Assembly (NCBI GenBank): GCA_904063045.1
Contig: CAJFCJ010000026.1
Coordinates: 784,964-848,963, forward strand
Reading direction: 5' to 3'
Source: Dimorphilus gyrociliatus
Lineage: Eukaryota > Animalia > Annelida
Length of the DNA: 64,000 nt
A program made the position numbers and the translations under genes. Numbering within the stretch: the stretch's first letter is position 1; every line of letters begins with the position of its first letter. Below are positions 1-60,664 of this stretch, piece after piece. The notes under the pieces are model-generated. The model was not told where the DNA came from. It searched no databases and saw nothing but the letters and a program-made list of their open reading frames with translations.

Positions 1-1001
1 ATTCAACAGCATTTCTTATTTATATATACAGTCAATAGGCCAATAGTTGAATTATTTAGATATGCATACTAAGAATTAGATTGACCTTCTGGAATCTAGC
101 TATTCTCCTTGGATATTTTTTTAAATATTTAAACTAAGTGTCTCTTTCTCTTCTGCTTCTTCACGATACTTTCAATTAACTTTCAAGAGAAATAGACCTG
201 CTTACGGTTCTCGTTGTAGAGATGTACTGTTCCTCAGTTCTTTCTGCTTGAATCTCTGACAATAGGACAATTCAAAGATAACACTTTTATACAATAAACA
301 TAATTAGAACCTTTAATTGAATTTGTTCTTTTTTTCAACTTTTCTCGACTCAATCGAATTTTAGAAAGGAGAAAAAGTGCTTATTACACTATATAGCATT
401 TACATTCATGCGATTTTCTTTGACGATGGCTGTAGGTGAACAAGAGCATGGATTTGAAGAGAAAGTCTGCTCAATCATCCTGTAATTAATAATGATATTA
501 TCTAGGCATAAATCAATTGGAAAGTTCAATTTCTACAGTCTAATACAATGAGAAGATTATGGGGAAAATCTTTCCAAAAGAGAAGATGACTCGAAGAAGA
601 AGAAAAGAAATGAGAGAGAGAGATTTTGAATATAGTCCAACTAAAAAAAATGACAAGGATTAAATGATCTGAACAAAGCAAACTGTTGAAAATGGAATTG
701 TTGTATAGCATCTAGTAATAAACAAGACAATTGTTGCTATTTGAAATCAACGTTAATCCTTGACACTTTCATCAATGAACAGTAGGCCTTCTTCATTTTC
801 AACGTCAGGCTCGGTGTTGTGTGGTTGAAGCTTTTTCGTTGTATAACAAAGCTTCATCTTATCGCATGTATGATTGTGTTCCTTCCGTAGATTCGTAACG
901 ACAAGGAAATTTCCAGTCGAGCCGGCAAACAGAGTAAATCCAGCCTTGCAGTCGGTTTTTCTTGTCCTGCGTTTGTTGAAAAGAGTATATAAAATAAATA
1001 G

Positions 1002-1026
1002 GAAGAAGAAGAAGAAGAAGAAGAAG
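1002..1026 (+). repeat. (GAA)n microsatellite
   Basis: About 8 perfect GAA units; explains the poly-K/F/S stretches in the overlapping ORFs at 753-1113. Confidence 0.95.
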
Positions 1027-3299
1027 AGTAGCACCTTTGTTTACGGATTCCTCTGCCTTTACTTTCGTAGGATCCCCACCTCTCGCACCGATATTTCACA
1101 TAGGAATATTTAATGTCATCCCTGAAGATATTGGAACAAAGATGAAAGCAATGAATAGTGAATTATAGTGATTATTGATACTTGAAATGTCTTAATGGCG
1201 CTTTCTTCCTGCCCCTTTCAAGGGTTGTAGAGTCAACGACGACGAAATGGCATTTTCCCTCCTTTTCGTATGAACTCAATGCAGAGAGAAAAGATTGAAA
1301 CGACGAATATTTGCTGCCTTCGTTAAGTTCTTCGTCCACTTCAAATATTCAAATATGAAAGAAAAATGAAAACATTTCAATATTTGAAAAACCGTCTCTG
1401 CCGGATGTTGTTTTTTTATTGTTAAATATAATTAAACATTCCTACTACAACGGCCATTATTAATCTATTCAATGTTATCCTATATTCATTTCAATTTAAA
1501 ACAAACTTTTCAATGGTTTTCTCCTACAAAATTCGCAATTTCACAATATCTCAGCTTCCAACTGACAGCCAGGGAAACGTTTCCTCCCGCCAATGTTGAA
1601 ACAACTACTTCCGGTTTCTCTCTGTAAAGTATAAAATACATTTAATAGATGACGATAAAACGACTAAACAACAAAAATCGCGTTCAGATTGCCTAGCTTC
1701 TCTCTTTTCTGAGAGTAAAAAGAACTTTTCTTAAAGCAAATTAATTACTTCTTTGAGAAGTTATCGGGTACCAGATTATAGAAATATAATTTCCGGTATA
1801 TGAGTCCATGGTACCGTACTGTACCACCGCCCAGTCAGTTTGGTTCTGACCAGACCCCCTGTTGTGCAGCAGGTTGAAATTTGCATGAATTTTTCTGTTT
1901 CCGAGAACTTTAAGTACTGATTTGCAAGCAACTCTTCTTTAAAATATGCTACGAGACTGTTGACTTTATGGTATGTGTTACCAACTTTTTTTTTCCAGCT
2001 AAATAATTATTTTATGAAAATGCCGCCATCTTGAAAATATTTTAAATTGTCTTTTCTCTTTTTTTCTTTAATAGGTTTATGCTGATTACAAAGCGCTTGG
2101 CAAGATATCTCTTAGGTGATCTGGTCTGCGCATTGAGATTATTCTCGTCGAGTTTATTTCATGAAGAATCAAGTTATCATCAACACACCGTAGCGACAAG
2201 CCGTTGAATGTAATCCTTCTCTTCGTCTACGAGTGTCTCTGTTCATGAGTTTGCTAGAAAACTATTTACAAGTCATTTGTTGATATAGTCTATATTCAGT
2301 GAAACGTCTTACTTTTTATCAGGCGATTTTTTTCCTGAACAAATCTCCGGATTATCATTTCAATTCCCAAAAACAAACTTTGAACGAATAGATGAATTTA
2401 TAATTTCACTGAACTTTCAACAAATTTTTTTCGTCCTTATTCAAATTGATACTTCTTTAATATTGGAATACAAAAGCAATTCAGCATTTTGATTGACTAA
2501 AATTGACTATTAATTCTTTTTATAACAACTTCGGCAATTACTTGGTAGTAATAGATCTTCAAAATGATAATCGGGTCCTTTTAATCCATCTATAGAGATA
2601 ATAAAAAAAATTGATAATTGTTTATTATAAAAAGAGATAATCTTAAAAATTTATCATATTTATCTCCTAAGATTTTTGGAAATGGAATATTATATTGATG
2701 CTTATATTGGAGTATATACAGTAGTATCCACTCACTTACCTACTCATTGTTCCTTATTACCCTAGCCTCGGTCGTTTGTTTTGTTATTGAAATTAAATAA
2801 ATAAGAGAACGCAACGTTTGTCCATTATTTTCCATTCTTATCATTTGCTTCCTTATAAGATCTAATACGAATATCTTTTATTTTAAATTTTTTTTTGTTA
2901 CTTAAGCAAACAATCTTCCACTTTTTAAACGTTCGTTGTTGATGAATAAAGCTGAAGCGAAACCATGGCAATCTAGTTATCTTTTGTCTTGTAGCAAGTT
3001 TAATAGAACGGATAATCTTTTTTTAACTTTTCTTATTTTGTTCAAAATAATCATTTCTTTTTAAAGAGTCAATTTCATATCTCTTCTAAATAAAAGTTGA
3101 GACTCTTCTTCAAATTTGTGAATTAAGACTGTATGAAAGAATTATATTATTTCATAAAGAAACGTTTTTATAGAACCAATATTAAATAATTAGCATCCTT
3201 TCCTAAAAGTGTCCTCAATTTGATTGTCTACGCAGAAAAGCAATTGTCAAGAGACGGCTAAGTTACAATAACATCTTTTCGCATAGGATGCAAACTGGA

Positions 3300-5143: not shown

Positions 5144-5803
5144 TTATCTTGATGCACTTTGAAAAGTTTGAGCAGCTGCCAAGAGGTCGTCGATGCAGGC
5201 TTCACGGTGCCATAGTTCTTGAACTTTCTTTGCCGTAAATTCGTCTGTTAAACCTAAAACGAAGAATGATGAGAGCATAACATCAATATCAGCGCAGCCT
5301 ATTTGATGAATAAGAATCCTAAGCTCTGCGAGAAATTCTTCTGGAGTTTCGTCAGGTCTTTGCTTACGTTGTCCGAGACGACGTAGAGCTTCGCCAGCGG
5401 GTAGGTAACTTTGGGTACACGACATGAAATCTCTAACTCTATTCCATTCCCATTTGGTTGGATCAGGACCGAATATCTGAGCCATTCTTAATCGGTTTTC
5501 CTCCGGTATAGAGCTAAGGATAAGCCTTAATTTTTCCTCATTTGTTTCTTGGAGTACAAAATCTACTGTCATAAAAAAATGTTGCCAATTTGTCCGACTC
5601 GTCACAGGAGGTAACAAACGAGATGGACTCATTGTGCTTGATAATGATTGATTATCAAAATTCGACATTAAATTATGTTGGTTGATTATAAGGAACCTTA
5701 TCAGATTTTCACTTGAACCAGACGGCTGAAGAGAAGCGAATTCAGAAGAAGCAAATCGAATACTCACTGAAATTTCAATATAGTTTATAGGCCTACGAAA
5801 CAT
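5144..5803 (-). CDS. Stand-alone Ty3/gypsy (Mag-like) Gag/capsid-domain protein, 219 aa
   Basis: Uninterrupted ORF containing QRKQRPDETPEEFLAELRILIHQIGC...FFVLGLTD, matching the retrotransposon gag pattern R-x-Q-x3-E-x3-E-F-x2-E-L...F-V-x-G-L. No CCHC knuckle, protease or RT follows the stop. Confidence 0.75.
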   Translation of the reverse strand: MFRRPINYIEISVSIRFASSEFASLQPSGSSENLIRFLIINQHNLMSNFDNQSLSSTMSPSRLLPPVTSRTNWQHFFMTVDFVLQETNEEKLRLILSSIPEENRLRMAQIFGPDPTKWEWNRVRDFMSCTQSYLPAGEALRRLGQRKQRPDETPEEFLAELRILIHQIGCADIDVMLSSFFVLGLTDEFTAKKVQELWHREACIDDLLAAAQTFQSASR

Positions 5804-6024
5804 TGCTATGGATTGAATTAGTTTAATTCTTTCTCAAGCTTTTTCTTTCTCTTTTTTATCTAGTAATTAAAATTTATAAGATCGATAGTATAATTATCAT
5901 ATTTTATTCGTCGTCATAGGTTAGATAGCGCCATAAACGAAGCGTTACTTGTAATAGCAGAGCATCAACTAATTAATTATTCATTTGTAAAGATTTAGAA
6001 TACGAGAAACAATTGAATAACAAA

Positions 6025-6601
6025 TTAATTTAGTCGATAAACTGCATCGTACAATTCTCTATCTAGACGAGCGATAGAACTTTCTTCTTGTTCAACTTTC
6101 TTTTTGTTAGCGATCTTTCTCTTGCCTCTTTTCTTTTGCTTTTTAGTTCGCTTCTTATCCAAAGCTGGAGTTGTTGTGTTTTTTAAACAACGGCGTCGTC
6201 TTCTCTTAGTCGGAGAACCAAAAAAATTTATCAAAGTAGGAATAGCGATTGGAAGAAGACTTATTTTTTCAAAACTATTGAAACAATTATCAGTAAAGTG
6301 TGCAGAACATACTTTACGACGTTTTAAAATTTCTGGATTATGTTTAAATTCATGGTCCAGATCGTCATTACCCAAATTTCGGACCCATAGTCTCCTTCTT
6401 AAAAAGGGCAACAATTATAATTTAAAAATAATTTTTCTAATTAAAAAGAGAAATAATCTACCTTTGATAATCTCTTGGAAAAGAATGATATTTAACATGA
6501 CGATCCCTGGTCGAAACATTTCTACAGTTGTACGCCTGACATACGAGACCGCCACGTTTGGGAGGCACGGAACCGGCTTGTAAGTTCACCTCTTGAATCA
6601 T
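6025..6601 (-). CDS. THAP zinc-finger protein 1 (2 exons: 6601-6462, 6397-6025)
   Basis: ATG at 6601. Exon 1 gives CQAYNC...YHSFPRDYQR; a 64-nt GT..AG intron (6461-6398, phase 2) joins in frame to RLWVRNL...VCSAHF...AIPTL, completing the C2CH THAP signature and AVPT box; basic C-terminal tail. Confidence 0.88.
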
Positions 6602-7703
6602 TTTAGGGAAGTTTAATGCCGAATTCTATCAGCAGTTTGAAAAATTTACGCACCTGTACAAAGAAAAAGTTACTATTGTATCATTTAATGTTTCTAGTGC
6701 ATTTAAAGTTTATATTTTACCGTAATTAATCAATACAAATTCGCGTAAAGTCTTTTCCAGAAGCTGTAAAGCTCGTTTCCACTAATGAAAGAAAATGCAC
6801 ACTTAATATAGTCAACAATGTCATTCTGAAAAATAAAATGGCGACCCTCTTATTATTTTTAATATCTACCATTATTCTTTTAATTTTTTTAAATATAGAT
6901 TTAGTATATCTGAAAAAAATACTAATTTTCGTAAACTACTTTTTTGAAATATTATTTGTAATATTTTAAATATATATTATTATTTAATTAAATAAATATG
7001 TTATTTACGAAAATAGAAAATATTGAATGATCATATTTGGTCAGTTCCCACTAATTCGTAACAAAACAAAGCGGTCTGCAAAATAATTAAAAAGCAAAGA
7101 GTTTACAGTTATATCTCAATAATAAAAACAACAACGCTATTACACTACAAAAGCAACCTATTGGAGATAAGTTGTTTGATAATTGGAGCTCGCGATTGGC
7201 TATAAACTAAGTAAAACAAGAAGAATTGAAATATTAAGAGAATACTATAAACGCACAATAGTGTAGAAAGTATCTAATGATGAACGAATGGTTTGAGAAA
7301 AACGGTGTAATTGCATATTTTATTCTTTCAATTATTCTGGGTATAAGTTTGTACAAGAAAAAAATCACAAAATCACAATGATTCGTCATTCATCCTCAAT
7401 TCTTTATCTATCTTCAAGAGCATACAGGTGTTTATAGTTGTAATTGTTTAAGTAAGAAAAACGCTATAATTGATTATAATCGGTTTGAGACTAGTTTTGA
7501 ACAATAGACAAGAGTAAGACTTAACTAGATGTTTGAGATAATCGACGTACAACAATAAATACCCCGGTGCTTGAATATATTTATTTCTAATGATTAAATA
7601 TTTTGTTCGAATTGCGTAAACTGTTAGACTATTCATTGTAAATAAATAATATACATAATACGCTGAAAATATATAATCTTGAAACAGTTTTTAAAAACAA
7701 GCA

Positions 7704-8594
7704 CTAGGAACATTCGCTCTTGATAGAATTAATCGGCATAGATCGTTGTCTGGAGCGATATATCTCCTCGCCTTCTGTAATAACGTCCAGAAAAGCGCTC
7801 CACGATAAATTCCTTATCCACTCGTTTCTTCCTTGAAAAATTGGATAACTTTGAGCTGCTCGAATTACTTGCTGAATTTTAATGAAGTCACGTTGCTGCG
7901 GAGGAAAAGCCTGATCTACCAAATTGCTAATACGTTTTGCAAATTGATGCAGTCTTTCATAATTCGAGTCCCATATCTCGGAGAAAATAATCATTTGTTG
8001 AGCCTCCCTTCTCCTTTCGCCGTCAAATTCCCTCGTAAATGCGGTATTTAGTTGCTGCCAAGTCAACTGATCATATTGAAGAAGGTATGAAAAGATGGAC
8101 TTGGCTGGACTGTCCAGGACATGGTTGAGTACAATTAATCTCGTTTGTTCAGACAATGTTGAACATACTCTTTGAAAACTTTCCTTGTATTGGGACCAGG
8201 ATATCTCCTGTAAATCTCCCGACCAACGATCCAATCTGTCCACTGCCAATTGGACGCCTCTTTGCTGCTCTGGTGTTGAACTAACCAAAAAATCTGGTTG
8301 GGTAAAGTTCTCGTGAGGTGATGATAGAGAGCCGCTTCCTGGTGTTGTTATAGATATTCCCGAAGTGAACATCATCGGCAATGGCGAAGCTGCTATAGCA
8401 ATTTTTCGCTCCTCTTCCAAAGCTTTGACTCTCTTCGCCATTCTTTCTAAAGACCGATTCATCAATTCCAAGGTTCCCAAAATTCGTGAAATTGAAAATT
8501 CTCTCATATTTTCGGGATTTAAGGCTTCTAAATCTCTTATCTCTCTTTTAATAGGCCTACTCACTTGGTTGTTATTGTCGGAATTTGAAGCCAT
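7704..8594 (-). CDS. Stand-alone Ty3/gypsy-type Gag/capsid protein with N-terminal coiled coil (~296 aa from ATG 8594)
   Basis: Uninterrupted ORF (track start at 8639 is GTG). Heptad-like LELMNRSLERMAKRVKALEEERK, S/P-rich linker, then capsid-like RWSGD..SW..YKESF...LDSPAKSIF...LTWQQLNTAFTREF..ERLHQFAKRI. No zinc knuckle or pol downstream. Confidence 0.72.
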   Translation of the reverse strand: MASNSDNNNQVSRPIKREIRDLEALNPENMREFSISRILGTLELMNRSLERMAKRVKALEEERKIAIAASPLPMMFTSGISITTPGSGSLSSPHENFTQPDFLVSSTPEQQRGVQLAVDRLDRWSGDLQEISWSQYKESFQRVCSTLSEQTRLIVLNHVLDSPAKSIFSYLLQYDQLTWQQLNTAFTREFDGERRREAQQMIIFSEIWDSNYERLHQFAKRISNLVDQAFPPQQRDFIKIQQVIRAAQSYPIFQGRNEWIRNLSWSAFLDVITEGEEIYRSRQRSMPINSIKSECS

Positions 8595-9772
8595 AACAAC
8601 TTTTGTGTCGGTTTCTAAGGAATCAAATGTGGCACACACTTCAACTTTAAATTGTTTCTGTTTGGGATATCTGCTGAAAAATATAAACTATTACTATTAC
8701 ACGGCGACCAGATTATGGACAATGATAAAATTTCAAAGTTACTTACACAAAATAATTCGTCGTCTTTCAGATGGACTAATAAAGACACGAACTAGCCTGT
8801 TGTTTTCCTAAACTGTCTTTTACAATTTCTGTCACCACAAATAAGTCTCCTCATTCGACGCAGCAGCACAAGTGCCAAGTTGGCGCAAATAAGAAAGGAT
8901 ATGACGTCAAATTAAGAGCACAGGCTACATCATTTCCTGTCTCGTCACCAGAAGCACGTGACGTTCGACGAAAAATTTCAAAAGTTCGATTTGTTTTTTA
9001 TATAAATAAATTATTAAATAAAAGAGGATTTTCATGAAAATAGATTAAATTAATTTTTAAAAATCATATCGCATAAGGTATAGTCTTTAAAATAGTAAAT
9101 AGAGAATAAAATTGGAAGAAGATTCATTTTCAAAGTCACAAAGCGATGATCTGTTTATTGATAATATCAATCCTTAAGAGCCTTCACAATCTAACGAATA
9201 ATCAATAGCACAAATGCTATAAATAATTATCACTAATTGTCAGATAAGCACAAAAGATTGGTATTTTTCCTTCACAAAGATTCAAAGCGATGCTAAACGT
9301 AGGGCGACGTCTGTCAAATTCTGCACAGTCAAGAGTTCTGCAATCAATTGAATTATATATATTAGTACATAATAAATATATAATTAGATGACTAATTTTG
9401 TTAATGTTTGGTGTCTTAAAAAGGTTTTTCGGTGTTAATCAATTTCAACGAAATTCATTGAAAAATTGCAGTGTGCTTTCCATTTGTTTAACTAAATGAC
9501 TATCTATTGTTTGTTTCCGAGTTACAAGCATAATTTTGGATAAATATTTGTAAAAGGATAATTCTTAAATAATCCTTTTTCTTGTATGATGAATTTTTAC
9601 GGGTAAATCAAACTTTAAATATTTGTATGATCAGAATTTCGTGCCAAAAAAAAACAACGCAATTTACGGATATCCGTTTAATTAATTTTTAAATTGCAGA
9701 CAACAGGAAATAGATCATCTCTTCCCAACAATAGCAAACATTCGTTAACATTTACCTAAGAAATTAGCGATA

Positions 9773-10457
9773 ATGACATCCGGTGGTGGTTACAATTGTG
9801 TGTCTTATAAATGCTATAATAACTCGTTAAGAGATCGATCTGTTAAATATCATCAGTTTCCAAAGGATTTAGATAGGTAAGCTAACGTTTCTCTTTACAT
9901 AGAAAATCCCGATTCGTAATGAAAGCACTCTTTTCTTAGGAATTCTAATACATTTTCTTATTACAGAGCTGCAATTTGGGTACGCAATTTAAATAATGCC
10001 GAGCTGCAATCAAAATTTGATAAGAATAAAGATTGCATTAAATTCAAGAAAGTTTGCTCCGAACACTTCGAAACAAGAGAATTCAACAATCCGGATAGAT
10101 TATACTTGAAGCCTTACGCAATACCAACAATCATTAAAGGTGTGAAACCCCCACCTTCTTATTATAAGAAGCGAGAACTGATGATAAAATATCACAAAAA
10201 TGTTAGTAATTTAATAACTGAATTATCTAATTAAAGACTTAAGCTAATTTTTTAGATGCCTTGTGATTATGACTTATTAAAAAATTATATAATTACCGAT
10301 GAAGATGAGACAATGGATAAAGTAAGTTGTTCATTTTTTGAGAAAAAATTTAGATTCTATGTCTACAATTCAATACTAAAATATTTTTAATTAAAAGGTC
10401 ACAGTTGAGCAATTGAATGAACCCGAAAATTTTCATATGACAGAATTTTTAATATAA
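9773..10457 (+). CDS. THAP zinc-finger protein 2 (exons 9773-9876, 9967-10201, probably 10256-10321 and 10398-10457)
   Basis: Absent from the ORF track. MTSGGGYNCVSYKCYNNS...YHQFPKDLDR | GTAAG..TTACAG (90 nt, phase 2) | AAIWVRNL...VCSEHF...AIPTI. Two further GT..AG introns (54, 76 nt) keep frame to a stop at 10457; without them the frame stops at 10234. Confidence 0.85.
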
Positions 10458-10695
10458 GAAATTCGCTAATTTTCTTTTCCAATCTTTTCTTAGTAATACA
10501 AGTAATGATTGACATTTAATATAGAAACGATATTTAAATAATAAAACCACTAATTATGACTTATCTTATCTCTTTGCTTCATAGAGGATACAAATCTTAT
10601 CATCTCTTTTCCAATACATCTTCAGTAAAAAGAATTTTAATATTCGAAGACGATGTTCAGAAATTTAATATTTCCTGTTGCCTTGCTTAAATTGT

Positions 10696-11747
10696 TTAGG
10701 TATTTTTTTTGTACGTTTTTCGAATGTTGTAACTCATTGGAGGTTGAAAATAACTTATACCTCCATTAGGTAAAATAGAGACAAATGAATTTTGTTGACA
10801 AAGACCCAAACAGCTCCTATACTGTACCATAGAGTTTGGAGATGAATTTCCACTGAATCGGTTTACTGGTGGATAGTAATAAAATTCCGGAGGCCTATGC
10901 GACCTCGTTAGCCTGCATCTTGGCGTAAAATGTCTATGGCTAAAGTAAAAAAAGTGATCTGAAAGAGAATGTTATTATTAATAATAATTTCAAGTAAATT
11001 ATAATTAAATTCCTACTTGGAAAGTATCTTCTATAATTCTCACCACCATTTGGAAATCTCCAATCTTCAAAACAGTATAATGATTAATTAATGTATAATA
11101 GGCTTATTTTCAATTCTTACTAATTCCTTGACAGGAATGACGTAGCATGGGTGCTCCGTAGAATCGAGTATATCTGGTATCTGGTTTAATAATAATAATA
11201 ATAGAATTTAGTTAATTCGTTAAAAAATAGTTTAAATCCATACTTTTACGTCTATGAGCGTAATATGCATACCGATTACGGGGATACTGAGAACCTGCAA
11301 TGTGTAAAACTATTTTAGGCATAGTCTATTTAATAGTTATCGCTAACTAGTAGAAATATTTATCTCTTCATCCTTATTTCTCTTATATTTATGGCTATCT
11401 TTTCTTGGATCTATTGGAAATATATTATATTTCAACAGTATTAAGATAACAGTAGACGATTCTCACCTTTTGGTGAAATATCTCTATCCTGTTTATCCTC
11501 TTTGTAATCTTGACTCATTTTCATTTTATCCGATTCGTCATTTTCTGAATCAGGCGAGCTGGGAGCAGATAGACAAATACTGTCTGGCGACATTTGTTCA
11601 TTAGAGAAATCTAATAACGGTGTATCAGAGGATAAAAAATCCGAAAGTGAACATGGACTCTCTTCATTCTGAAAAAAAAATAATCAATAAGCATTTAATA
11701 GAATTGCTTTTGTTATTCTTTATCTTATAAACCTGTTCTCGGTCCAT
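10696..11747 (-). CDS. 7-exon orphan gene, ~233 aa low-complexity protein (acidic N-terminus, R/Y/F/P-rich C-terminus)
   Basis: Exons 11747-11733, 11668-11467, 11410-11348, 11294-11244, 11180-11121, 11064-11017, 10958-10696; six GT..AG introns of 53-64 nt; splices to a continuous 702-nt frame ending in TAA. No recognised domain. Confidence 0.7.
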
Positions 11748-18984: not shown

Positions 18985-19400
18985 AGGGATTTCCTATTTT
19001 TCGATAACTTATATTGTATTCTTTGTTTTGAATATAGAGTCCGAGTCTTGAAGAAACTTTTTTATGAAGTTGTAATATACCAGTTTGGTATTTTGTAAAA
19101 CTTTTCCTCTGCTGCCTTCCATATATCTTCTCTTGTCTCGGAAAATATTGTAATTTCGCATCCGTATTCTCCTTTTTGAAAAGAGTTCTATCCAACCGTT
19201 ATCTGAAAATATTATTTCCTTAATATCATCTTGTGACTTGTCCAGCATATTCTAACAAAACATTTTCCTCTTTCTTCCATGGCATGCCTTTAGAGCAGGT
19301 TTCCTTGCGGCATTATGTCCTTTAAGTTTGCAATTATGTAACATTCACTTAACAGGCTATCAATCATCGCCTTTTAACCTGGGCTTAACAACAATACAAG
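18985..19400 (-). pseudogene. Internally deleted Tc1 transposase remnant (family of the 31.4-32.5 kb element)
   Basis: LKGHNAARKPALK..RKRKMFC*NMLDKSQDDIKEIIFSDNGWIELFSKRRI joined directly to the C-terminal EDIWKAAEEKFYKIPNWYI; both parts align with 31850-31990 and 32385-32500. Confidence 0.75.
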
Positions 19401-19419
19401 AGAAATCTTTCATTCATTC

Positions 19420-20250
19420 GAAAATCTTTTCCATATGATTTCAGTATCGTAGATACAATATCTCTTAGTAAAAGGATTACTAGGTCCCTTTCCATTCAAT
19501 TTCAATTCATCCGTAAAATTGACGTTGTGTCATCAATACATCAATACAAAGTAATCACACTTTTAATAAAACTCTTTCTCCATCTATATTCGTCTTCAAA
19601 ATTTTAATATCTTTAGCATATTTTACTTGTTAAGGCTTCTCTTCCATCTCTGTTTTAATTAATTATTTGCTTTAGAACGGTTGTTCTAAAGAAGCTCTCT
19701 TAGTCTCTGGTTCATGATAAAACGCCCTTGTTCTTTAGTCAATTCATTTACTCTGCAACCATCTACTTTTTTGATTATCGTACACCAGGGTTACTCTCTT
19801 ACATGTAGCATACGTTTTCAATAGGTGACAGATTTGGGCAGTAAGTAAGATAAAATTCTTCTCATAGAGCTTTCCTGAAAAATACATCACTTATTTTTTG
19901 AGATGGGACAAATACCACTCCTTGGTGAACTTCCGAGGCAAAAATAACTGGTTTTTTAAAATGTGTTAGCTGAAGCTTTCATCCTTTGAGCGACTGTTTT
20001 TGTTACATCTTTTAGGGTTTTTTCTATAGTTTTCCGTCGGACATTAAATTTCAAGAAATCGTAATTTAAGTGGTTGAATGATTGTTTAAATTATTCATCT
20101 TTTTCTATTTAACAATGATTTTCCTGTCTCAACGTTTCCACTTTTAACATATGTAGGTTTTACAATATATTGAATGGACGCTTGAGGAATGTGCATCATT
20201 TCTGGAATCTCTTCCTTGGAATATAATGTCTAAATAACTTTTAAACTGGA
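19420..20250 (-). pseudogene. Scrambled Tc3/Tc1-like and mariner fragments
   Basis: NVNFTDELKLNGKGP (cf. Tc3 IFSDEKKFNLDGP), TYCPNLSPIENV (cf. 29550), an N-terminal piece resembling 28920-28990, and a mariner-like FYHEPETKRAS segment near 19720. Confidence 0.55.
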
Positions 20251-21734: not shown

Positions 21735-22344
21735 TGAAGTCTCAATAACTTTTCATTTAGGTCTCACAAGTTGGGAAAACTGCATACCGTAAAAATATAA
21801 ATGCAATTTGAAAACGAATGACAAAGTAGTACTTTTCCTAGGCATTAAACTCCTTATATTCCAAATAGATTATATTTTTTTGACTGCAAATTTAACTGCC
21901 GTTTTTATCATATCATTTTAATGATATTGATATGAATACAGTATATGAAGCATCTAATGGTTTCTATTAAAAATCAACGCGTAGGAAAGTTCTCCTCCAG
22001 CCAGTTTTGCAGTTTTCCTATTTAAATTATTAGGCAGTGATAGAACATCTTTTGAATAATTATTTAGTCATTCATCTTGGATTTTCCCCCAGTCCATTCT
22101 CTTATCTCTTTACTTCTTTCGTTGATTCTGAAATCCTTAGACTGTTCATTCTTGAGGCATTTGTTACTATACTGATCATAGAAACCTGCAATATCGTCGC
22201 CTTCTAAACAAAAATATTCATTTATTATATAATTTACCTCGATTTCATTTATATTATTTCTTTAGTCAATATATCATTATCTTTTATATCAACACCTACA
22301 CAATTATTAACATTTGAGAGGATTTTTCATTTCATTTTTTTACG

Positions 22345-23976
22345 TCTTCACCCTGCAATATTTATAAATGTATTTATTTTACAAGTTTCGTATTTTTAAG
22401 TCTCAGTTTTTATATCTTATGCTTCCTGGTTAGTTCATACAACCTTATTACACTTTCCACACAATCTATTCTCAATTTGTTTCGAGATTCGTCAATTTTT
22501 CTTCGGCAGACGCCATTTTGACCACGTGTTTCTTAAAAAAAACTAGTTATGACTAAAATGGCATTTGTCAACAAAATTTCCTCATATTTATATTCAGTAG
22601 ATAGAATTTTGGTGAAATATGAATTTCAGCATCAAAAAGACAATTTTTTATTGAATTTGATAAATCAGTTAAATAATCACTTCTTTCGATCTAATAAAGC
22701 GTCAAAATGACATTCTTTTTGACATAGAATATATTTTGAAGTACATAGATACAAAATGTTGATGAAAAGCAACATGACAATGATTTAAAAAGCGTTAATC
22801 GATCATTATTTCCATCAGTAATATTTCATACAAATATTCATTTAAAAGAAGTCGCCATTTTGTTTCCAATTCAGAATATCAAAATGTCAGCTATTAACTT
22901 TTATTTGTCAGAATAATTGTGAAAAAGTTCAAAGTATTTAAAACGCAATTGATAGAAATGAAAAAAACCAAAATATAAATGTTTAAATATCTGTCATGTG
23001 ACATTTAAAGTTTTCAACATTTTTGCAAAATGGCACCACTGTTATTCAATTGTATCGGTTGGATATTTTGATTTATCAGATTTGTGTGTAGATTATGAGA
23101 AATTTGATCATGTTTTTATTTGCACTTTCGATGGAAACCTTTAAGAATATAAGCCTAGAAAAACATGGCGTCAGTTGTTTTTCTCAACAATTTCAACACG
23201 AAATTCAATTTGTTATTTACGCTAATCGGAAGAGCTTTTTATTGAAATGAGATGCACAACTCACAGTAAATACGATTAGAATGTTTAGAAGTAGAAGCTT
23301 GCGTTATATCTAGAATAAATGCAATCTAACTGTACGATAAAGGGTGAAGCAACCGCAAACACACGTCGCACTCTCAACTTTCTTCGCATTAATTGCTTTT
23401 AAATCCTGAAAAATGTGTAAAATAAATGAAAAGTTTGCATGCAGTTTGATGAAAAGTTTCGAGAGAATTTTACGAAACCTTCCAAGTTGAAAAGTGTATA
23501 AATAGGCGAAAGCTGCGAGGTACAAATCAGTGTAAATCGGGTTAAGTATTGTGGTATTACAAGATCAGACACTACTCCTAAGATTGACGATTTTTTTTTT
23601 ACGTAAGTATAACGTTAAAATTTTGCATTGCTGTAGAATTGTAATGGTTTGGTTCTTTTCAGGAGAAACGCCTTGACTTTACACTCCAATCGGAAAAGAA
23701 GCTGAATTTGGTCACAGTAGGGTAAAATTCCTTCTTGAAGATTGTCGTTCATTTCTTATGGACAACTCTGCGTGTGACAAGTGTTCTGGAAAAACGAAAT
23801 GGAAGAGAAGCATCTCGACTGAATACGAAATTCTCTCTGAACGAAACAGCACAACCTAAATCGAAAAGAAAATGCTGAAAGAAACTGTATATATTATGTT
23901 GAAATTTGTCTTTAACTGATCTCTCTATTCAATAAACATTACTTTGAACAAATCATTTTAAGACTTGCGCATTTTT
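22345..23976 (+). repeat. Segmental duplication block A, copy 1 (partner 42418-44040)
   Basis: Near-identical over most of its length, offset ~20071; ORF 23310-23525 is identical to 43381-43596. Confidence 0.95.
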
Positions 23977-24940: not shown

Positions 24941-25124
24941 TAATATTAATAAGGCCGTTTTAAAATAACAGCAAAGTGTATGAAACTATCCCGATCGTAT
25001 CTAATATTAGAATATTAAACTAAATTCTAAACCCAAAACGTTTAAATAATTATTCAATACTTTCATTTTACGATTGTAAAACATCCATTGACCAAAATGA
25101 TTAGCCTAAGTATATGCACTGCAA

Positions 25125-26500
25125 AGATATTTACCTTTTTATAGATATTGCAAATCATACAATTCCAGTCTTTGCCACTTTCTTCGATTATCAGGTCGAG
25201 GTATCTGTAATTATTCCATACATTAGATTATAGTTTGTAAAAGAGTTAACACAAAATCCACTACTGTATTACTTAGTTAACCGATTCTTGCAAGTGCTTT
25301 GAGTATCGTTTTTTTACTTATTAGATTGATATCACAAACCAAACAATTTATTATAAATCTTATTATTATTCAAATATTCCAAATTATATTAATCAATAAT
25401 CTACAATGTTGCACTTTCTGTCAATTCAAAGCCAATTGTACAATGTCGATATACCGTGTAATCAATGTAACGGTCATTGCAAAAACGATCATGTATGAAA
25501 AATAAGTAACAAAAATCAATATTTGAAGAAATGTGTACTTACTAAAAATTATAATCTTTGCAAATTGACGAAAATGATCAATTTTAGTCAAATTATTAAT
25601 AACCAAAAACCACTTATTATATTTCTCAAAATTCAAAATAACGCAATTTCTTAATAATTAATATTTCGCAACAAAAATTATAAACTGGTATAAAGTGTAT
25701 TACTGAAAATAGTTCCACCTCTTTTCCGAAATGCGGTGTCTCGAAACTTCTATTTTCTTTTTTCGACTTTTCCTTTTTAAATGATGACTTATGTTCAATC
25801 TTTGATAATCGTTAGGAAACAATTGTAACTTTATCGTGAAGTAATACATAAACAATATTTGATTTATAAAAAAAGAATCGGAATTTCAATAGTCAATTTA
25901 GTCTATATAAATAAATTGATTGAATAATTCTAAATAACAAACTATTGAATATTAACAACAAGACTTGTCATTTATTAAAATGTCAATATTTATTTTTACA
26001 TTTGAAATAAACCGCTAATAATACTATGAATATTTCGTGATATGAAATTAAAACCCGGTAGAATATTAAAATCGAAAGTAATCCTACCTCTTATCAAAAA
26101 TATGGTGTCTTAAAAGTTCAACGTTCGGCGTGCTTTCTTCAACAAAAAGTTTAAAGTAATACGTAACGAAGTCTTCGGTAAATAATTTTCATTAAAACAA
26201 AAATTCATATTCTTTAGAGAGATCATTCTGGGAGGAATTGAATTATATGAATAATTATGGTTTATGCAAGTTGACTCGAAACGAACTGAAGAGAGCGTTA
26301 TTAGGAAAGAGAATAACATATGTTGCAGTTTTGCAAAGAATTGTAAAGAAATCGAATGTAAGCGTCAATAAAAGAGGACTGATATACTGTACATATTAGT
26401 ATCTTATGATAAAAGTCTATCATATTGTGTATATATATGCAGTGAGAGACGAATCTTTTCGTGCCATACTTAGTTTTAGCGTTTTCTACTAACTTTTCTC
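25125..26500 (+). repeat. Segmental duplication block B, copy 1 (partner ~44416-45783)
   Basis: Near-identical from ~25200 to 26215 (offset ~19290), more diverged at both edges. Confidence 0.92.
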
Positions 26501-26879
26501 CCTTAGCTAATCGAAATAACTATGTTTTAGATTTGAAGACATTAGAAATTTATTTCAGTTTCCTTACGAAACAATGAAAAATTTCTTTAAAAATATTGTG
26601 TGATTAATTGATAATTTTTTCCTATACCCTTTGTATTTCACGAAAATGAAAAACAATTCAAATGAATGTTTTTTTTTCTATTTTTTTATGTAAATAGTGT
26701 TTACTTTTTATTTTTATATAGAGTTGTTATATTTTTAATTTAAAGCCGTTTTTTTGCAGTATTCCGATTGATTCGTCAGTCCAGAGACTCATGATGAAGC
26801 TTTTTCATCTCTTCCTTTCTCTTTCTGTTAAACTATTCAAGACATGGAGTAATGGACCGAGCTTCCAAGCCTGATTACT

Positions 26880-31072: not shown

Positions 31073-31414
31073 TAAATAATTGCATGTTCTATTCGGAAAA
31101 AGAGTGTCCCGAAATGCTTCCTGCTTTTTTACAATAGTGACGGAAAAAAATTATAGAATTATATCTAAAATGTATCAATAAAATCAATACTCTATCTGAC
31201 ATTCTTTGATCGTTAAAAAGCGAAGGATAATACGCAAATTAAATTAATTCAACAGGACGATATTAGGAATAGGAAATCACGAGGTATTATACAATTACAA
31301 ACAAATGTATTTCACTTCCTAAAATTAATTTAACCAACAGAGAATGAAAGAAAATACGAGACAGCTGAATATATGTTTTTTAAACAATTAAATCAATACG
31401 ATAACATGAGGAAA
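31073..31414 (+). repeat. Duplication block C, copy 1 (partner 46161-46502)
   Basis: 342 bp apparently identical, offset 15088. Confidence 0.93.
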
Positions 31415-32598: not shown

Positions 32599-33290
32599 AA
32601 ATATGTCAATCGAATTACACCTATTGCTGTAATTCATTGATAGTTATAAAGTCGAATGATGGTACGCATAAAAATTAATAAACCTTCCCTCGAAAATGAC
32701 CTATTTTATTGATATTAGGAATAGGAATCACACCGAAAGGTACAATTACTGTAATTCTGCCACTTCAGATTACTGTCGGCTTTGGAAAGTTTTCGGATTG
32801 ATGAGGATGAATTTGAGCAATTTTCTTTAAATGAACAAAGCCATTAAAACTGGAAGAATACACGAATTAACAAGTAAATTGTGCGTGATGTTATGATGAC
32901 AGATACAAAAGAATTAATGCTGTATCTGTGATCTAACATGACGAAATCCACTGATGATACAACAAACGAAGATATGATTTGACGCAAACCTGTTGCACTT
33001 GAACAGTATCTTCCCTTAAATAAGAGTAGCAGACCTAAAAATACGATCTTTCCGAATACCAAAAAGGAAAGGATACCTATCTACGCTAGTTTAAGCCTCT
33101 GGTAATTTTGCTAATCACAGAATGTTAGCCCTTGTTGACACTGGTGTTACTCCCTAATAAGTCGTCGATTTTTCCTGCAAACCGAATCAATGTACAGCGA
33201 TGAATGCACGTTAACAACGATTTCCAAGCCATCTTAACCGAGAACGTAAAGTTTATCTTTTTTGTATTGTGTAGAAACTGCGATGTTTAC
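32599..33290 (+). repeat. Duplication block D, copy 1 (partner 47925-48616); contains unknown-family module plus BEL gag/protease remnant
   Basis: 692 bp apparently identical, offset 15326; ALVDTG and HVNNDFQAI parallel ALLDTG and YVNNDFQTI of the 49043-49900 ORF. Confidence 0.92.
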
Positions 33291-33881
33291 GCATATATTG
33301 TTGATTCTTCACCTTTGATGCAAAGTCAGCTAGCTATATACTGTATATTCACAGAAGATGAAGATGAATTAGGACAAGGAATCATACGGAAAGATACAAT
33401 TTCTATGGTTTTGGCCCATCAAACTACACTGATTTTGGGAAGCTTTCCGGTTGATGAGGATGCAGTTCAGCCTTTTTTTATAATGAGCAACGCCTGCCTA
33501 AAAATTGGGATAATTAAAGTGATAATTTATTAAATTGAGGTAGAAATTGCACTCTTAAATATTGTAACTAACTTGTTTTTCAAAGCAGAGTTAATTGATG
33601 GAGTAGGAATGAGGATAAATAATGTTATTCAGGGAGATAGAACATCTCTATAACCATAGAAGCAACAGAATCTTTAAAAGAAATATTTAAGATTTTTATG
33701 ATTAGAAATAAGACAAGGATCGTGAAAATTGAAGAATATTTCTCATCTTTTCAATAAAGCATAGATGAATATGTAGTATAGTCTTTACTAAAATAATTTA
33801 GACAATACCACCTATTCATTTTGGTTGTTTTAGAACAATCAACTAGTGTTTACGTGGAAGATAAATAAGAAAATGTTATTT

Positions 33882-34245
33882 AAAGAGTTTTATTAAAAGT
33901 GTGATTACTTTGTATTGATGTATTGATGACACAACGTCAATTTTACGGATGAATTGAAATTGAATGGAAAGGGACCTAGTAATCCTTTTACTAAGAGATA
34001 TTGTATCTACGATACTGAAATCATATGGAAAAGATTTTCGAATGAATGAAAGATTTCTCTTGTATTGTTGTTAAGCCCAGGTTAAAAGGCGATGATTGAT
34101 AGCCTGTTAAGTGAATGTTACATAATTGCAAACTTAAAGGACATAATGCCGCAAGGAAACCTGCTCTAAAGGCATGCCATGGAAGAAAGAGGAAAATGTT
34201 TTGTTAGAATATGCTGGACAAGTCACAAGATGATATTAAGGAAAT
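33882..34245 (+). repeat. Inverted duplicate of 19214-19577 (chimeric Tc3-like + Tc1 fragments)
   Basis: 364 bp reverse-complement match, apparently identical. Confidence 0.93.
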
Positions 34246-34299
34246 TATTTGTTCAGATGAAGCTAAGAATGTTTTTCCTTAACATTTATATAATGTATA

Positions 34300-41200: not shown

Positions 41201-42417
41201 ATAGTACCAATGGTACAAATTAAAAATGATATAACATTTTCATGTAGGTTTCATGTTTTAGTGGTGGGCTCTATTTACAATGAAAATCCTTGATAGATTA
41301 TTAACTTTTTGAGCTGATAATGAATAATCTAACTTTTATATTATATTGCTGCCTTAGATCTCCTTTATCAACATTATTTAACATACATGTTTTCTATAAA
41401 CGTAGATTTTCATGATTTTGGAAAATTTTTCGCTGTTGGCCAATTTTGTGATTTGCAGAAACACAGTGTAGTGTTTGATCATCTTCTCAATCGCTCTTAA
41501 CAATATTTCCAGTTTTTTTCTCTCTTCATTACTATATTATCCCTTTAACCTATTCTAAAATTTGTAACTGGTTGTTTTGATGGCATCTCTAACACTATAA
41601 CATAGCAATCTCAATAACACATATTATACCGAAGTTGCAAGAAGCTTTCATCATCAAATTATCTATTTTATAGAATGGGCAAGGGTATCTTTCATTCCTT
41701 GTGAAATTACGAATGTTTTGCAGTTTAAGAAATATCAAGGAATATGTTGCTTGACCTTTCGTATCTTAAAACTAAGTGATAAGCATGTTATCTTGGACAA
41801 GCAAAACCGCTTTGCCTGGATAGAATTGGATGCAAAACACGTATGCTATATGAAAAAAGACATGTTAAAAGCACAACACTGACATTAATATATAAAATAG
41901 GTTTTAATAAGCTGCGTTAACTTACCAGTCCTTTTATTAAAGGAACATTCCTTTATATATATTAGTCATATCAAAAGTCATTTCATCTCCTCTCTCTTCT
42001 TTAATTCCTATAAAAAGATTCGTCAACAATTTCATTATCTTTCCACTTCTCAAAACAATCGATTGACCTTTTCGAAACTCTTTTCACTTCCTTAACATGC
42101 TCTATTTATAACGTCAAGTGCTACAATAGTTGAACAATCATGTATATCATATGTTAATAGGCTAAATAACATTGTTATTTATACATCATCAATTGCAAAT
42201 CTTTTTAATACTTCAAACTAATACTATATATAAACATTTTCCTAAATCGTAATAAAAGAATACATCAAAATAATTAACCAATTTTATATCGAAATTTTAC
42301 TCAATTTCCATTAAAATTCGTTTATGATTTTTCTTTAGATACTCTATAATTTTTTTCAATATCAATATATATACAAGTATCAACATTTGAGACGCTATTT
42401 CATTCATTTTAACACAT

Positions 42418-45400
42418 CATCACCCTGCAATATTTAAAAATGTATTTATTTTACAAGTTTCATATTTTTAAGTCTCAGTTCTCATGTCTTATGGTTCCTT
42501 GTTAGTTCACACAACCTTATTACACTTTCCACACAATCTATTCTCAATTTGTTTCGAAATTCGTCAATTTTTCTTCGGCAGACGCCATTTTGACCACGTG
42601 TTTCTTAAAAAAATTAATTATGACTAAAATGACGTTTTTCAACAAAATTTCCTCATATTTATATTCAGTAGATAGAATTCTGGTAAAATATGAATTTCAG
42701 CATCAAAGAGACAATTTTTTATTGAATTTGATAAATCAGTTAAATAATCACTTCTTTCGATCTAATAAAGCGTCAAAATGACATTCTTTTTGACATAGAA
42801 TATATTTTGAAGTACATAGATACAAAATGTTGATGAAAAGCAACATGACAATGATTTAAAAAGCGTTAATCGATCATTATTTCCATCAGTAATATTTCAT
42901 ACAAATATTCATTTAAAAGAAGTTGCCATTTTGTTTCCAATTCAGAATATCAAAATGTCAGCTATTAACTTTTATTTGTCAGAATAATTGTGAAAAAGTT
43001 CAAAGTATTTAAAACGCAATTGATAGAAATGAAAAAAACCAAAATATAAATGTTTAAATATCTGTCATGTGACATTTAAAGTTTTCAACATTTTTGCAAT
43101 ATGGCACCACTGTTATTGAATTGTATCGGTTGGATATTTTGATTTATCAGATTTGTGTGTAGATTATGAGAAATTTGATCATGTTTTTATTTGCACTTTC
43201 GATGGAAACCTTTAAGAATATAAGCCTAGAAAAACATGGCGTCAGTTGTTTTTCTCAACAATTTCAACACGAAATTCAATTTGTTATTTACGCTAATCGG
43301 AAGAGCTTTTTATTGAAATGAGATGCACAACTCACAGTAAATACGATTAGAATGTTTAGAAGTAGAAGCTTGCGTTATATCTAGAATAAATGCAATCTAA
43401 CTGTACGATAAAGGGTGAAGCAACCGCAAACACACGTCGCACTCTCAACTTTCTTCGCATTAATTGCTTTTAAATCCTGAAAAATGTGTAAAATAAATGA
43501 AAAGTTTGCATGCAGTTTGATGAAAAGTTTCGAGAGAATTTTACGAAACCTTCCAAGTTGAAAAGTGTATAAATAGGCGAAAGCTGCGAGGTACAAATCA
43601 GTGTAAATCGGGTTAAGTATTGTGGTATTACAAGATCAGACACTACTCCTAAGATTGACGATTTTTTTTGAACGTAAGTATAACGTTAAAATTTTGCATT
43701 GCTGTAGAATTGTAATGGTTTGGTTCTTTTCAGGAGAAACGCCTTGACTTTACACTCCAATCGGAAAAGAAGCTGAATTTGGTCACAGTAGGGTAAAATT
43801 CCTTCTTGAAGATTGTCGTTCATTTCTTATGGACAACTCTGCGTGTGACAAGTGTTCTGGAAAAACGAAATGGAAGAGAAGCATCTCGACTGAACACGAA
43901 ATTCTCTCTGAACGAAACAGCACAACCGAAATCGAATAGAAAATGCTGAAAGAAACTGTATATATTATGTTGAAATTTGTCTTTAACTGATCTCAATAAA
44001 CATTACTTTGAACAAATCATTTTAAGACTTGCGCATTTTTTTCCTCAACTTCGCTTTTTTCATTAAACAAGTTGTTTTTTTTTTCGATGTTCTAACTTTA
44101 TAAGATTTTGGTTATTTTTATCTAAAGTTGCGTTTGATAGACAGAAAGCACTCGTAGTATCTTGGAGGATGTATCAAATTGAACGGTTGGGTGCTATTAA
44201 TGTTGATATTGGAAAACGCTGATACAGCATTAGTTAAAAAATAAGTATCGATTGATTCAAAAAAAAAAGATTTACCTTAAAAAAGAGCATAGATATATAG
44301 TATTTGATTCTTCCCTTAACATTCATGTATCTGAAATCATAGATTGTTTAATAAGAATCGACAAAAAGCATCAATATTATATTGCAAAATTGATGCTTCT
44401 CGGTTAGTTAGTAACGATATTTACCTTCTTATAGATATCGCAAAATCACACAATCCCACACGTTACCACTTTCTTCGAAAATCAGGTCGAGGTATCTGTA
44501 ATTATTCCATACATTAGATTATAGTTTGTAAAAGAGTTAACACAAAATCCACTACTGTATTACTTAGTTAACCGATTCTTGCAAGTGCTTTGAGCATCGT
44601 TTTTTTACTTATTAGATTGATATCACAAAGCAAACAATTTATTATAAATCTTATTATTATTCAAATATTCCAAATTATATTAATCAATAATCTACAATGT
44701 TGCACTTTCTGTCAATTCAAAGCCAATTGTACAATGTCGATATACCGTGTAATCAATGTAACGGTCATTGCAAAAACGATCATGTATGAAAAATAAGTAA
44801 CAGAAATCAATATTTGAAGAAATGTGTACTTACTAAAAATTATAATCTTTGTAAATTGACGAAAATGATCAATTTTAGTCAAATTATTAATAACCAAAAA
44901 CCACTTATTATATTTCTCAAAATTCAAAATAACGCAATTTCTTAATAATTAATATTTCGCAACAAAAATTATAAACTGGTATAAAGTGTATTACTGAAAA
45001 TAGTTCCACCTCTTTTCCGAAATGCGGTGTCTCGAAACTTCTATTTTCTTTTTTCGACTTTTCCTTTTTAAATGATGACTTATGTTCAATCTTTGATAAT
45101 CGTTAGGAAACAATTGTAACTTTATCGTGAAGTAATACATAAACAATATTTGATTTATAAAAAAAGAATCGGAATTTCAATAGTCAATTTAGTCTATATA
45201 AATAAATTGATTGAATAATTCTAAATAACAAACTATTGAATATTAACAACAAGACTTGTCATTTATTAAAATGTCAATATTTATTTTTACATTTGAAATA
45301 AACCGCTAATAATACTATGAATATTTCGTGATATGAAATTAAAACCCGGTAGAATATTAAAATCGAAAGTAATCCTACCTCTTATCAAAAATATGGTGTC

Positions 45401-45783
45401 TTAAAAGTTCAACGTTCGGCGTGCTTTCTTCAACAAAAAGTTTAAAGTAATACGTAACGAAGTCTTCGGTAAATAATTTTCATTAAAACAAAAATTCATA
45501 TTCTTTAAAGACATCATTCTAGGAGGAACGGAATTCTATGAATAATTAAAGTTTTTGCAAGTTGACCCGAAACTAACTGGAGAGCGATATTAAGCGAGAG
45601 ATATAATAACATATGTTGCAGTTGCAAAGAATTACAATGAAATTTAATGTAAGTTTCAATAAAAGAGGACTGATATACTGTACATATTAGTATCTTATGA
45701 TAAAAGTCTTTTATATTGTATATATACAGTTAGAAACAATTGTTTCGATATCTGGCTTTAGCGTTTTCAACTAACTTTTTCCC
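42418..45783 (+). repeat. Segmental duplication copy 2 (blocks A and B, with a different ~375-bp spacer)
   Basis: See blocks A and B. Confidence 0.92.
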
Positions 45784-46069
45784 TCTTAGAACAATGTGCA
45801 ATTTTAATATTAATTATCAAATTGAAAGTCCTAGAAAAGGATGTAATTTTGGGACAATTGTGAATACAACGATACGCAATTGACTCGTATCATGCCTAAT
45901 GGTTCAATAGAATTAATAGTGTCTTTTATCTTTTTTTAGTTCTGTGGACGAGCGCTAATACGTAATTTCATTAATTCACCTTCAGTCGGAAATAGTCTAC
46001 TATGATGGTATTAAGACTATTGAGTTGACATGTTTTATCCGAAATGTGTTAGAGGAAATAATACTGTTT

Positions 46070-57099: not shown

Positions 57100-57651
57100 C
57101 TAGTCTTGAATCATATTTCCTGCCAGTTCCGTTTCAAAAATAAAGGTTCGCAATTGTAGAGTCAATAGCTCTTTCTTTAAGCTGTTTATCTCTTTCTGCA
57201 GTTCCATCTTGTACACGCGTCGTCTCTCACAAGCTAAGCATCTTCCATTTCTCTTCGAATGTTGCGAATTTATAGAAAAAAAGTTAGCATTTCCGTAATA
57301 CGAATTTGTAGCAGTCGGTACACTGTGCGGTAAAAGTCGGCGTTTGTCATTATTGTAAAAGTCGGTATCTAGAAAATGTCTTGAGCAAATTATTTTCCTT
57401 AGTATGCAACGTGGATTCCTTCGAAATTCCTTTAGCAGAGTTTCGTTTTGCAAACTTCTCACCCATGCCTTGCATCTGGAAAGATGAGCGATAAAGGGTA
57501 AATTTAACTAAAAACTGCAAAAAAAGGCAAGTAAAATTATACAATACCTCTTGATATCCCTTGGGAATGAGTAGAAAGATATGGAATCCTTATTTTCGGG
57601 TTCATTTTTGTGCCAAACTTCTTGACAAATACAGCATTTTCGTTTAGACAT
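57100..57651 (-). CDS. THAP zinc-finger protein 3 (2 exons: 57651-57548, 57475-57100)
   Basis: MSKRKCCICQ...FYSFPRDIKR | 72-nt GT..AG intron, phase 2 | CKAWVRSL..ICSRHF..HSVPT, then a coiled-coil-like MELQKEINSLKKELLTL tail. Confidence 0.85.
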
Positions 57652-60600: not shown

Positions 60601-60664
60601 CACGCATCTCATCTGAAAGATAAGAGCTCCTAGTGATGACGACAATTATGAAAGGCATTTGAGA

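Follow-up and report, generated by a model that had tools for sequence, protein, structure and literature searches.

Do transposon-derived genes that lie side by side form a working unit, or have they come together by coincidence? The question is raised by a 64,000-nt stretch of Dimorphilus gyrociliatus DNA (contig CAJFCJ010000026.1, positions 784,964 to 848,963; hereafter the window), in which four genes are packed into 5.1 kb: Gag1, THAP1, Gag2 and THAP2. A first-pass annotation had read this island as a cluster of co-opted genes and possibly a functional module. Our analysis separates the two parts of that claim: host-type single-copy genes recruited from transposable element (TE) domains look supported, and a joint functional module does not. 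With moderate confidence we favour a local accumulation of small host-type genes that are single-copy and lineage-restricted, each apparently recruited from a TE domain on its own. The direct basis is the integrity of the reading frames, the splice models, the identity of the THAP domains, the uniqueness of the sequence and the missing hallmarks of a mobile element.

Gag-like reading frames in the island

Gag1 is an uninterrupted single-exon open reading frame (ORF) of 219 codons on the minus strand (5144-5803). The public model P0002 starts at the ATG at 5632 inside this ORF and encodes 162 amino acids (aa); a further candidate ATG is found at 5668. Gag2, also on the minus strand, is an uninterrupted ORF of 311 codons (7704-8639), in which the coding sequence of P0001 (7704-8594) starts from the ATG at 8594 and yields 296 aa. 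At 0.063 stops per codon in six frames, the expected number of chance ORFs per window is ∼0.08 for 219 codons and ∼2e-4 for 311 codons, so that persistence of these two frames by chance is very unlikely. AATAAA signals trail each gene of the island; that of Gag1, at 5142, immediately follows the stop codon. The 5' leader of Gag2 seems, from a reading of the sequence, to be spliced: an apparent intron in the 5' untranslated region runs from a GTAAGT donor near 8748 to a TTTTCAG acceptor near 8672. A patch richer in guanine and cytosine (GC) at ∼8880-8990, upstream of Gag2 on the minus strand, holds CACGTG and TGACGTCA. A bacterial-type promoter and terminator scan of the Gag2-THAP2 spacer was set aside as meaningless for a eukaryote.

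The two uninterrupted ORFs were found where the first-pass annotation had placed them; their Gag label comes from hidden Markov model (HMM) matches below threshold. The top Pfam match of Gag2 is a gag-clan family. Whole Gag2 matched PF03732 (Retrotrans_gag) with E 0.027 (15.1 bits), and its C-terminal 196 aa with E 0.0048 and 17.5 bits (cut-off 24.1), over profile positions 5-77 of 97. For Gag1, an exhaustive phmmer search of 1.84 billion cluster representatives returned one true relative, P0003, a protein of 134 aa with 50% identity (E 7e-35) that is encoded on a Logan-assembly contig of 999 bp; the second match, P0004, was spurious (a tandem-repeat protein). P0003 also has a gag-clan family as its top Pfam match. 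It matched PF14223 (E 4.8e-4, 20.1 bits, cut-off 27, profile positions 66-115 of 172) and PF03732 (E 0.053, 14.2 bits, cut-off 24.1, profile positions 44-89 of 97), and both matches fall on the segment that is conserved with Gag1. A W..W / F..GL..E pattern, typical of the PF03732 consensus, can be read in Gag1 and P0003.

As a yardstick we used E ≤ 0.1 against the GAG-polyprotein clan, the level of the first hmmsearch screen in a survey of gag co-option (Wang and Han, 2021; PMC8321522). Gag2 and P0003 passed at this level with the profile core covered, and P0002 did not. When 55 other ORFs of the window were scanned as controls at E ≤ 0.1, there was no gag capsid family among the at least 25 matches listed, which extended to E 0.056. 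Since a gag family comes out on top in two unrelated proteins and had been predicted beforehand, we judge gag ancestry of both Gag1 and Gag2 to be probable from their sequences. The two proteins show no similarity to each other by BLASTP or by hhalign profile comparison.

Several results weigh against this ancestry, and against co-option in general. None of Gag1, Gag2 and P0003 reached the Pfam gathering score for any family of clan CL0523, and Gag1 itself had no gag-family match; P0002 gave no Pfam match at E ≤ 10. Foldseek searches of PDB and BFVD with the predicted structures returned nothing better than E 0.47. Capsid entries appeared only at noise level; they were a retroviral Gag model (E 0.87, probability 0.38), the PNMA2 capsid (E 1.8), the human Arc C-lobe (E 2.6) and the C-terminal domain of RSV CA (Rous sarcoma virus capsid protein; E 3.7). 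The AlphaFold2 (AF2) model of Gag2 was built from a single sequence and is of low confidence, with a predicted local distance difference test (pLDDT) score of 43. Gag2 had no relatives in the word-indexed protein search, and the exhaustive phmmer search covered Gag1 alone. Co-option as a whole is a fair reading of these data but unproven.

These results would suit unrelated helical orphans, for example de novo genes, in place of one or both gag-derived ORFs, with spurious Pfam matches. Every gag match lies under its curated cut-off, the exhaustive search of Gag1 gave no retroelement polyprotein, sequence searches of PDB with the Gag proteins were blank, and no Foldseek capsid match was significant. 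We nevertheless consider such an origin rather improbable: the family predicted a priori heads the matches of two independent proteins and spans the profile core in them, and the matches listed for the control ORFs, which extend to E 0.056, contain none of this kind.

Both models are all-helical, at moderate (pLDDT 68) or low (pLDDT 43) confidence. The Gag1 model, built with P0003, has nine helices. Gag2 is predicted to begin with helices at residues 12-67, which a linker of low confidence (68-107) joins to a C-terminal half (108-295) that is helical throughout. A CCHC zinc knuckle is absent from the Gag1 and Gag2 sequences. Most likely, the two are unrelated capsid-domain-only remnants of long terminal repeat (LTR) retrotransposon gag, which would have come down without nucleocapsid knuckle, protease, reverse transcriptase, integrase or LTRs. 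With no nucleocapsid knuckle, RNA packaging of the Arc or Ty3 type is not indicated. The proteins probably survive as self-associating helical proteins, acting as adaptors or as dominant-negative binders of the capsids of related elements; by analogy, an adaptor or Fv1-like dominant-negative capsid-binding role is as plausible as RNA packaging.

We examined whether these ORFs belong to a mobile element or stand as genes. No pol or transposase was detected by family scans of the ORFs in the island, in agreement with the first-pass annotation. LTR-like direct repeats, convincing terminal inverted repeats (TIRs) and BEL/Pao pol fragments were not found in 1-16 kb, and the 3.7 kb downstream of Gag1 holds no ORF longer than 54 aa. 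The island (4.0-12.5 kb) is unique sequence that matches nothing elsewhere in the window, with no second copy of either Gag in the 64 kb. Neither Gag can be assigned to an LTR retrotransposon, for they have no flanking LTRs, no linked protease, reverse transcriptase or integrase, and no second copy in the window.

In a 5.8-billion-protein collection P0001 and P0002, which have entries in NCBI, UniRef and nr, are singleton clusters from one contig (865,716 bp) and have therefore no annotated paralogues. Word-indexed searches with Gag2, Gag1 and a Gag1+P0003 profile retrieved nothing beyond the queries themselves and P0003. Such searches see only proteins of 0.55-1.75 times the query length and so say nothing about polyproteins. 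No locus coding for Gag1 or Gag2 turned up in scans of metagenomes. Two reservations count against reading these data as evidence of single-copy host genes: singleton status could stem in part from repeat masking before annotation, and P0003 might not be an orthologue but a paralogue that escaped annotation. On the other side, the Gag1/P0003 alignment is co-linear at the C-terminus and conserved in blocks, and the P0003 ORF is intact; at 50% identity, neutral decay would hardly have left such a pattern.

Non-functional relics would offer a simpler account, with the Gag ORFs as remains of LTR elements, old or non-autonomous, and the THAP genes as those of P-like elements, all of them still open by chance and annotated as genes for that reason. 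A neighbourhood rich in TEs, two Gag proteins that are orphans without named relatives, and a gag similarity as faint as decaying sequence would show are all in keeping with it. We think it unlikely. With stops at 6.3% per codon, frames of 219-311 codons would hardly stay open; they are accompanied by neither LTRs nor TIRs nor remains of pol, and no further copies occur in the window or the proteome. P0003 remains intact and co-linear at 50% divergence, and all zinc ligands and a common intron are kept in all three THAP genes of the window at 32-53% identity (see below). The unique sequence, the lack of LTR, TIR and pol, the introns, the poly(A) signals, the singleton status and the existence of P0003 together favour host-type single-copy genes.

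THAP genes and the arrangement of the island

THAP1 lies on the minus strand. Its first exon (6462-6601) carries the start codon at 6601 and the CX4C ligands and ends in phase 2; the second (6025-6397) carries CX2H, an AIPTL motif and a basic K/R-rich tail and ends with the stop codon at 6025-6027. THAP2 lies on the plus strand, not the minus, and is divergent from Gag2; exon 1 (9773-9876) has CX4C, and exon 2 (9967-10234) has CX2H, an AIPTI motif and the stop codon at 10232-10234. Each gene has a single GT-AG intron (64 nt in THAP1, 90 nt in THAP2), in phase 2 and at the same spot, just past an FPxD motif. A third gene, THAP3 (57100-57651, minus strand), is intact and has two exons, parted by an intron at the same place and in the same phase.

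Profile searches with the THAP family (PF05485, Pfam cut-off 23.9 bits) were done exon by exon. Exon 1 covers approximately positions 1-27 of the profile and exon 2 positions 30-86, and exon 2 alone scored above the cut-off in all three genes (28.6 bits for THAP1, 31.8 for THAP2 and 25.3 for THAP3). C2CH ligands, the AIPT(L/I) box and these scores together identify the domain, and the first-pass description of two properly spliced THAP genes holds, with GT-AG introns in phase 2, zinc ligands and second exons above the Pfam threshold. Where HMM searches confirmed the THAP genes in this exon-wise manner, they left the Gag proteins below the gathering score, and the predicted Gag folds found no significant match. 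THAP1 and THAP2 are 53% identical in exon 1 and 38% in exon 2; THAP3 and THAP1 are 32% and 37% identical, respectively. The three would form one dispersed family with an ancestral phase-2 intron. Their products are most likely C2CH zinc-finger regulators that bind DNA sequence-specifically.

The THAP genes stop after a further ∼90-125 residues, and no transposase family was found on the ORFs near them. They cannot be placed with P elements or THAP9-type genes, as neither a catalytic region nor convincing inverted repeats accompany them. The region that follows the domain in THAP3 looks helical from its sequence. THAP3 sits 45 kb from the island and has no Gag-like neighbour, with no ORF longer than 75 aa within ∼3.5 kb.

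Do the THAP and Gag-like genes work together? In a functional module the THAP proteins would regulate the adjacent Gag-like genes locally, and the products of the latter would form capsid-like particles for RNA transfer or would serve in retroelement restriction. Proximity speaks for such a module: four such genes with intact ORFs lie within 5.1 kb, the divergent pair Gag2/THAP2 has ∼1.2 kb of upstream sequence in common, and THAP1 and Gag1 are in tandem with ∼220-390 nt between them. In this last interval, on one strand, two AATAAA signals (5908 and 5827) come after the THAP1 stop at 6025; next is a TTTCAG acceptor (5768/5767), and then the Gag1 ATGs. Judged from this layout, THAP1 and Gag1 could be co-transcribed in an operon-like manner if the host trans-splices.

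Against the module, Gag1 and Gag2 are unrelated, and the pairs do not share one arrangement, THAP1-Gag1 being tandem and Gag2-THAP2 divergent. THAP3 stands without a Gag partner, and neither Gag has the nucleocapsid zinc knuckle. A motif search for THAP binding gave a frequency at chance: TNNGGCA, a THAP1-type motif, occurs 67 times in the window vs. 66.8 expected, six of them in the island. A literature search found no THAP-gag association. We regard the functional module, which the first-pass annotation had put forward, as highly improbable on these grounds. Two structural explanations of the alternation were also rejected. A tandemly duplicated Gag-THAP unit conflicts with unrelated Gags and differing orientations, and a single composite transposon with Gag and THAP conflicts with the lack of terminal repeats and the unique sequence.

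Given the unrelated Gags, the differing orientations, the lone THAP3 and a FAR1-type neighbour (described below), the supposed module looks like a local concentration of genes. The alternation of Gag and THAP would then be a by-product of local gene density and not a repeated or co-evolved unit. Beyond the features read directly from the DNA, we infer the gag ancestry (from sub-threshold matches), all functions and the independence of the genes from one another.

Neighbouring genes and sequence setting

Two further genes lie in or near the island. The first, on the minus strand at 10696-11747, has seven exons (11747-11733, 11668-11467, 11410-11348, 11294-11244, 11180-11121, 11064-11044 and 10958-10696). 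All six introns are GT-AG and 53-85 nt long, the internal introns are in phase 1, and the frame ends on a stop codon. The N-terminal part of the product is acidic and Ser-rich, the C-terminal part basic and rich in Tyr, Arg and Pro. It had been described as a seven-exon orphan, and this description was borne out: the junctions are sound, the frame closes, and neither of the two large exons has a Pfam match.

The second is a FAR1/ZSWIM3_N-type zinc-finger gene (756-1348, minus strand), ∼4 kb from Gag1 and outside the interval of the first-pass annotation. Its exon pieces 1175-1348, 1028-1162 and 756-968 tile PF21599 at positions 2-42, 45-76 and 73-102 of 102, and score 22.2, 16.2 and 19.1 bits individually, each under the 27.8-bit cut-off. 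No SWIM domain or Mutator-like element (MULE) transposase core was seen near it. It would be a DNA-binding derivative of a different transposase and, like the THAP proteins, its product would act as a sequence-specific regulator. With this gene and the intact THAP3, the island is less exclusive than had been supposed.

The GC content of the window is 29-40% per 2 kb, mostly 30-34%, and introns in the gene models are short (53-90 nt); we take the window for AT-rich, short-intron, invertebrate-type eukaryotic DNA. The setting of the island would be a gene-poor, TE-rich part of such a genome. No conserved host genes were found among the 55 other window ORFs by Pfam scan, and Rfam and tRNA scans of the window were blank. 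BEL/Pao and Tc1/mariner are the element types across the window. Self-comparison showed 19-54 kb to be a patchwork of TE copies with a mutual identity of 70-100%. Young pairs include 32599-33296 vs. 47925-48622 (99.6% identity), 31073-31414 vs. 46161-46502 (100%), 22244-23976 vs. 42317-44040 (96.5%), 25123-26503 vs. 44413-45784 (95%) and, in inverted orientation, 19201-19577 vs. 33882-34258 (99.2%).

Essentially all elements outside the island had been described as broken. They are indeed fragmented, with the exception of one BEL/Pao pol piece: the element at 48.5-53 kb keeps a pol ORF of 832 aa, and its gag-protease portion is scattered over several frames. Pol is also present in fragments at 26.9-27.7, 30.1-30.5 and 36.4-38.1 kb.

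Two other features of the window were noted. A satellite array at 60661-62779 has a 67-bp unit in 31.5 copies with 86% matches and a higher-order period of 135 bp at 90%; ORFs running through the 67-bp satellite yield spurious PH_CERLI1 matches. The segment 16000-18000 has a marked strand asymmetry (GC skew +0.18, AT skew +0.23), and the overlapping low-complexity ORFs on its minus strand are without family match.

Relation to known transposon-derived genes

The THAP family includes human THAP1-11, C. elegans LIN-36 and HIM-17, and the N-terminus of P-element transposase. The genes described here resemble these in the C2CH ligands, the conserved W, the AVPTIF-like box, the N-terminal position of the domain, the small size of the protein and a Pfam match above cut-off. 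They differ in being very short, ∼120-170 aa by exon arithmetic, with a THAP domain only and no transposase domain, and in forming a local multi-copy family, with three copies in 64 kb. The gene at 756-1348 resembles FAR1/FHY3 and ZSWIM3-type proteins, which derive from MULE transposase, in that its exon pieces tile the ZSWIM3_N/FAR1 profile; it differs in that each piece alone is under the cut-off, with no SWIM or MULE core nearby.

Fv1 and enJS56A1 are gag-derived restriction factors. By analogy, a gag remnant retained by the host could bind the capsids of related elements here too, and Fv1-like binding is plausible for a capsid-only protein that lives amid young BEL/Pao copies 99.6-100% identical to one another. 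A difference is that the island Gags do not resemble the gag region of the window's BEL/Pao elements. A bolder reading would be a co-regulated anti-transposon cassette made wholly of transposon parts, in which THAP and FAR1-type proteins control neighbouring capsid-derived genes. The products of these genes would form particles or would act as a block on the capsids of LTR elements, BEL/Pao or other, that are still active in this genome. We regard it as highly improbable.

Co-opted gag genes are known from Arc/dArc, PNMA, RTL, SCAN, Gagr and Crtg1 (PMC8321522, PMC7231272). A survey of 2,011 eukaryotes reported only 14 deep co-option events of gag, half of which (seven) were in animals, with co-option defined by conserved synteny or a phylogeny congruent with that of the hosts, by selection and by expression (PMC8321522). 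The island Gags are like these genes in having a Gag-only ORF with neither pol nor LTRs, in their low copy number and in features typical of host genes, and Gag2 and P0003 would pass the first screen (E ≤ 0.1) of that survey. In its predicted N-terminal helices, linker and helical C-terminal half, Gag2 also resembles the Arc-type architecture, as far as a low-confidence model can be read. The island Gags differ in lying below the curated threshold, in showing no relationship to these families in sequence and fold searches, and in an apparently very narrow distribution, with one relative in total.

SCAN is a dimerisation domain derived from gag CA and fused to DNA-binding zinc fingers (PMC8321522). 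The likeness is that a helical domain derived from gag occurs together with transposon-related or zinc-finger DNA binding. In SCAN proteins the two are fused in one tetrapod-restricted protein, whereas here they are separate genes. At present the result is one of annotation: plausible TE-derived orphan genes, with a joint function unsupported. Should co-option of the two Gag-like ORFs prove genuine, they would be lineage-restricted invertebrate additions to a short list, and the region would show that TE-rich sequence can be a nursery for small transposon-domain genes.

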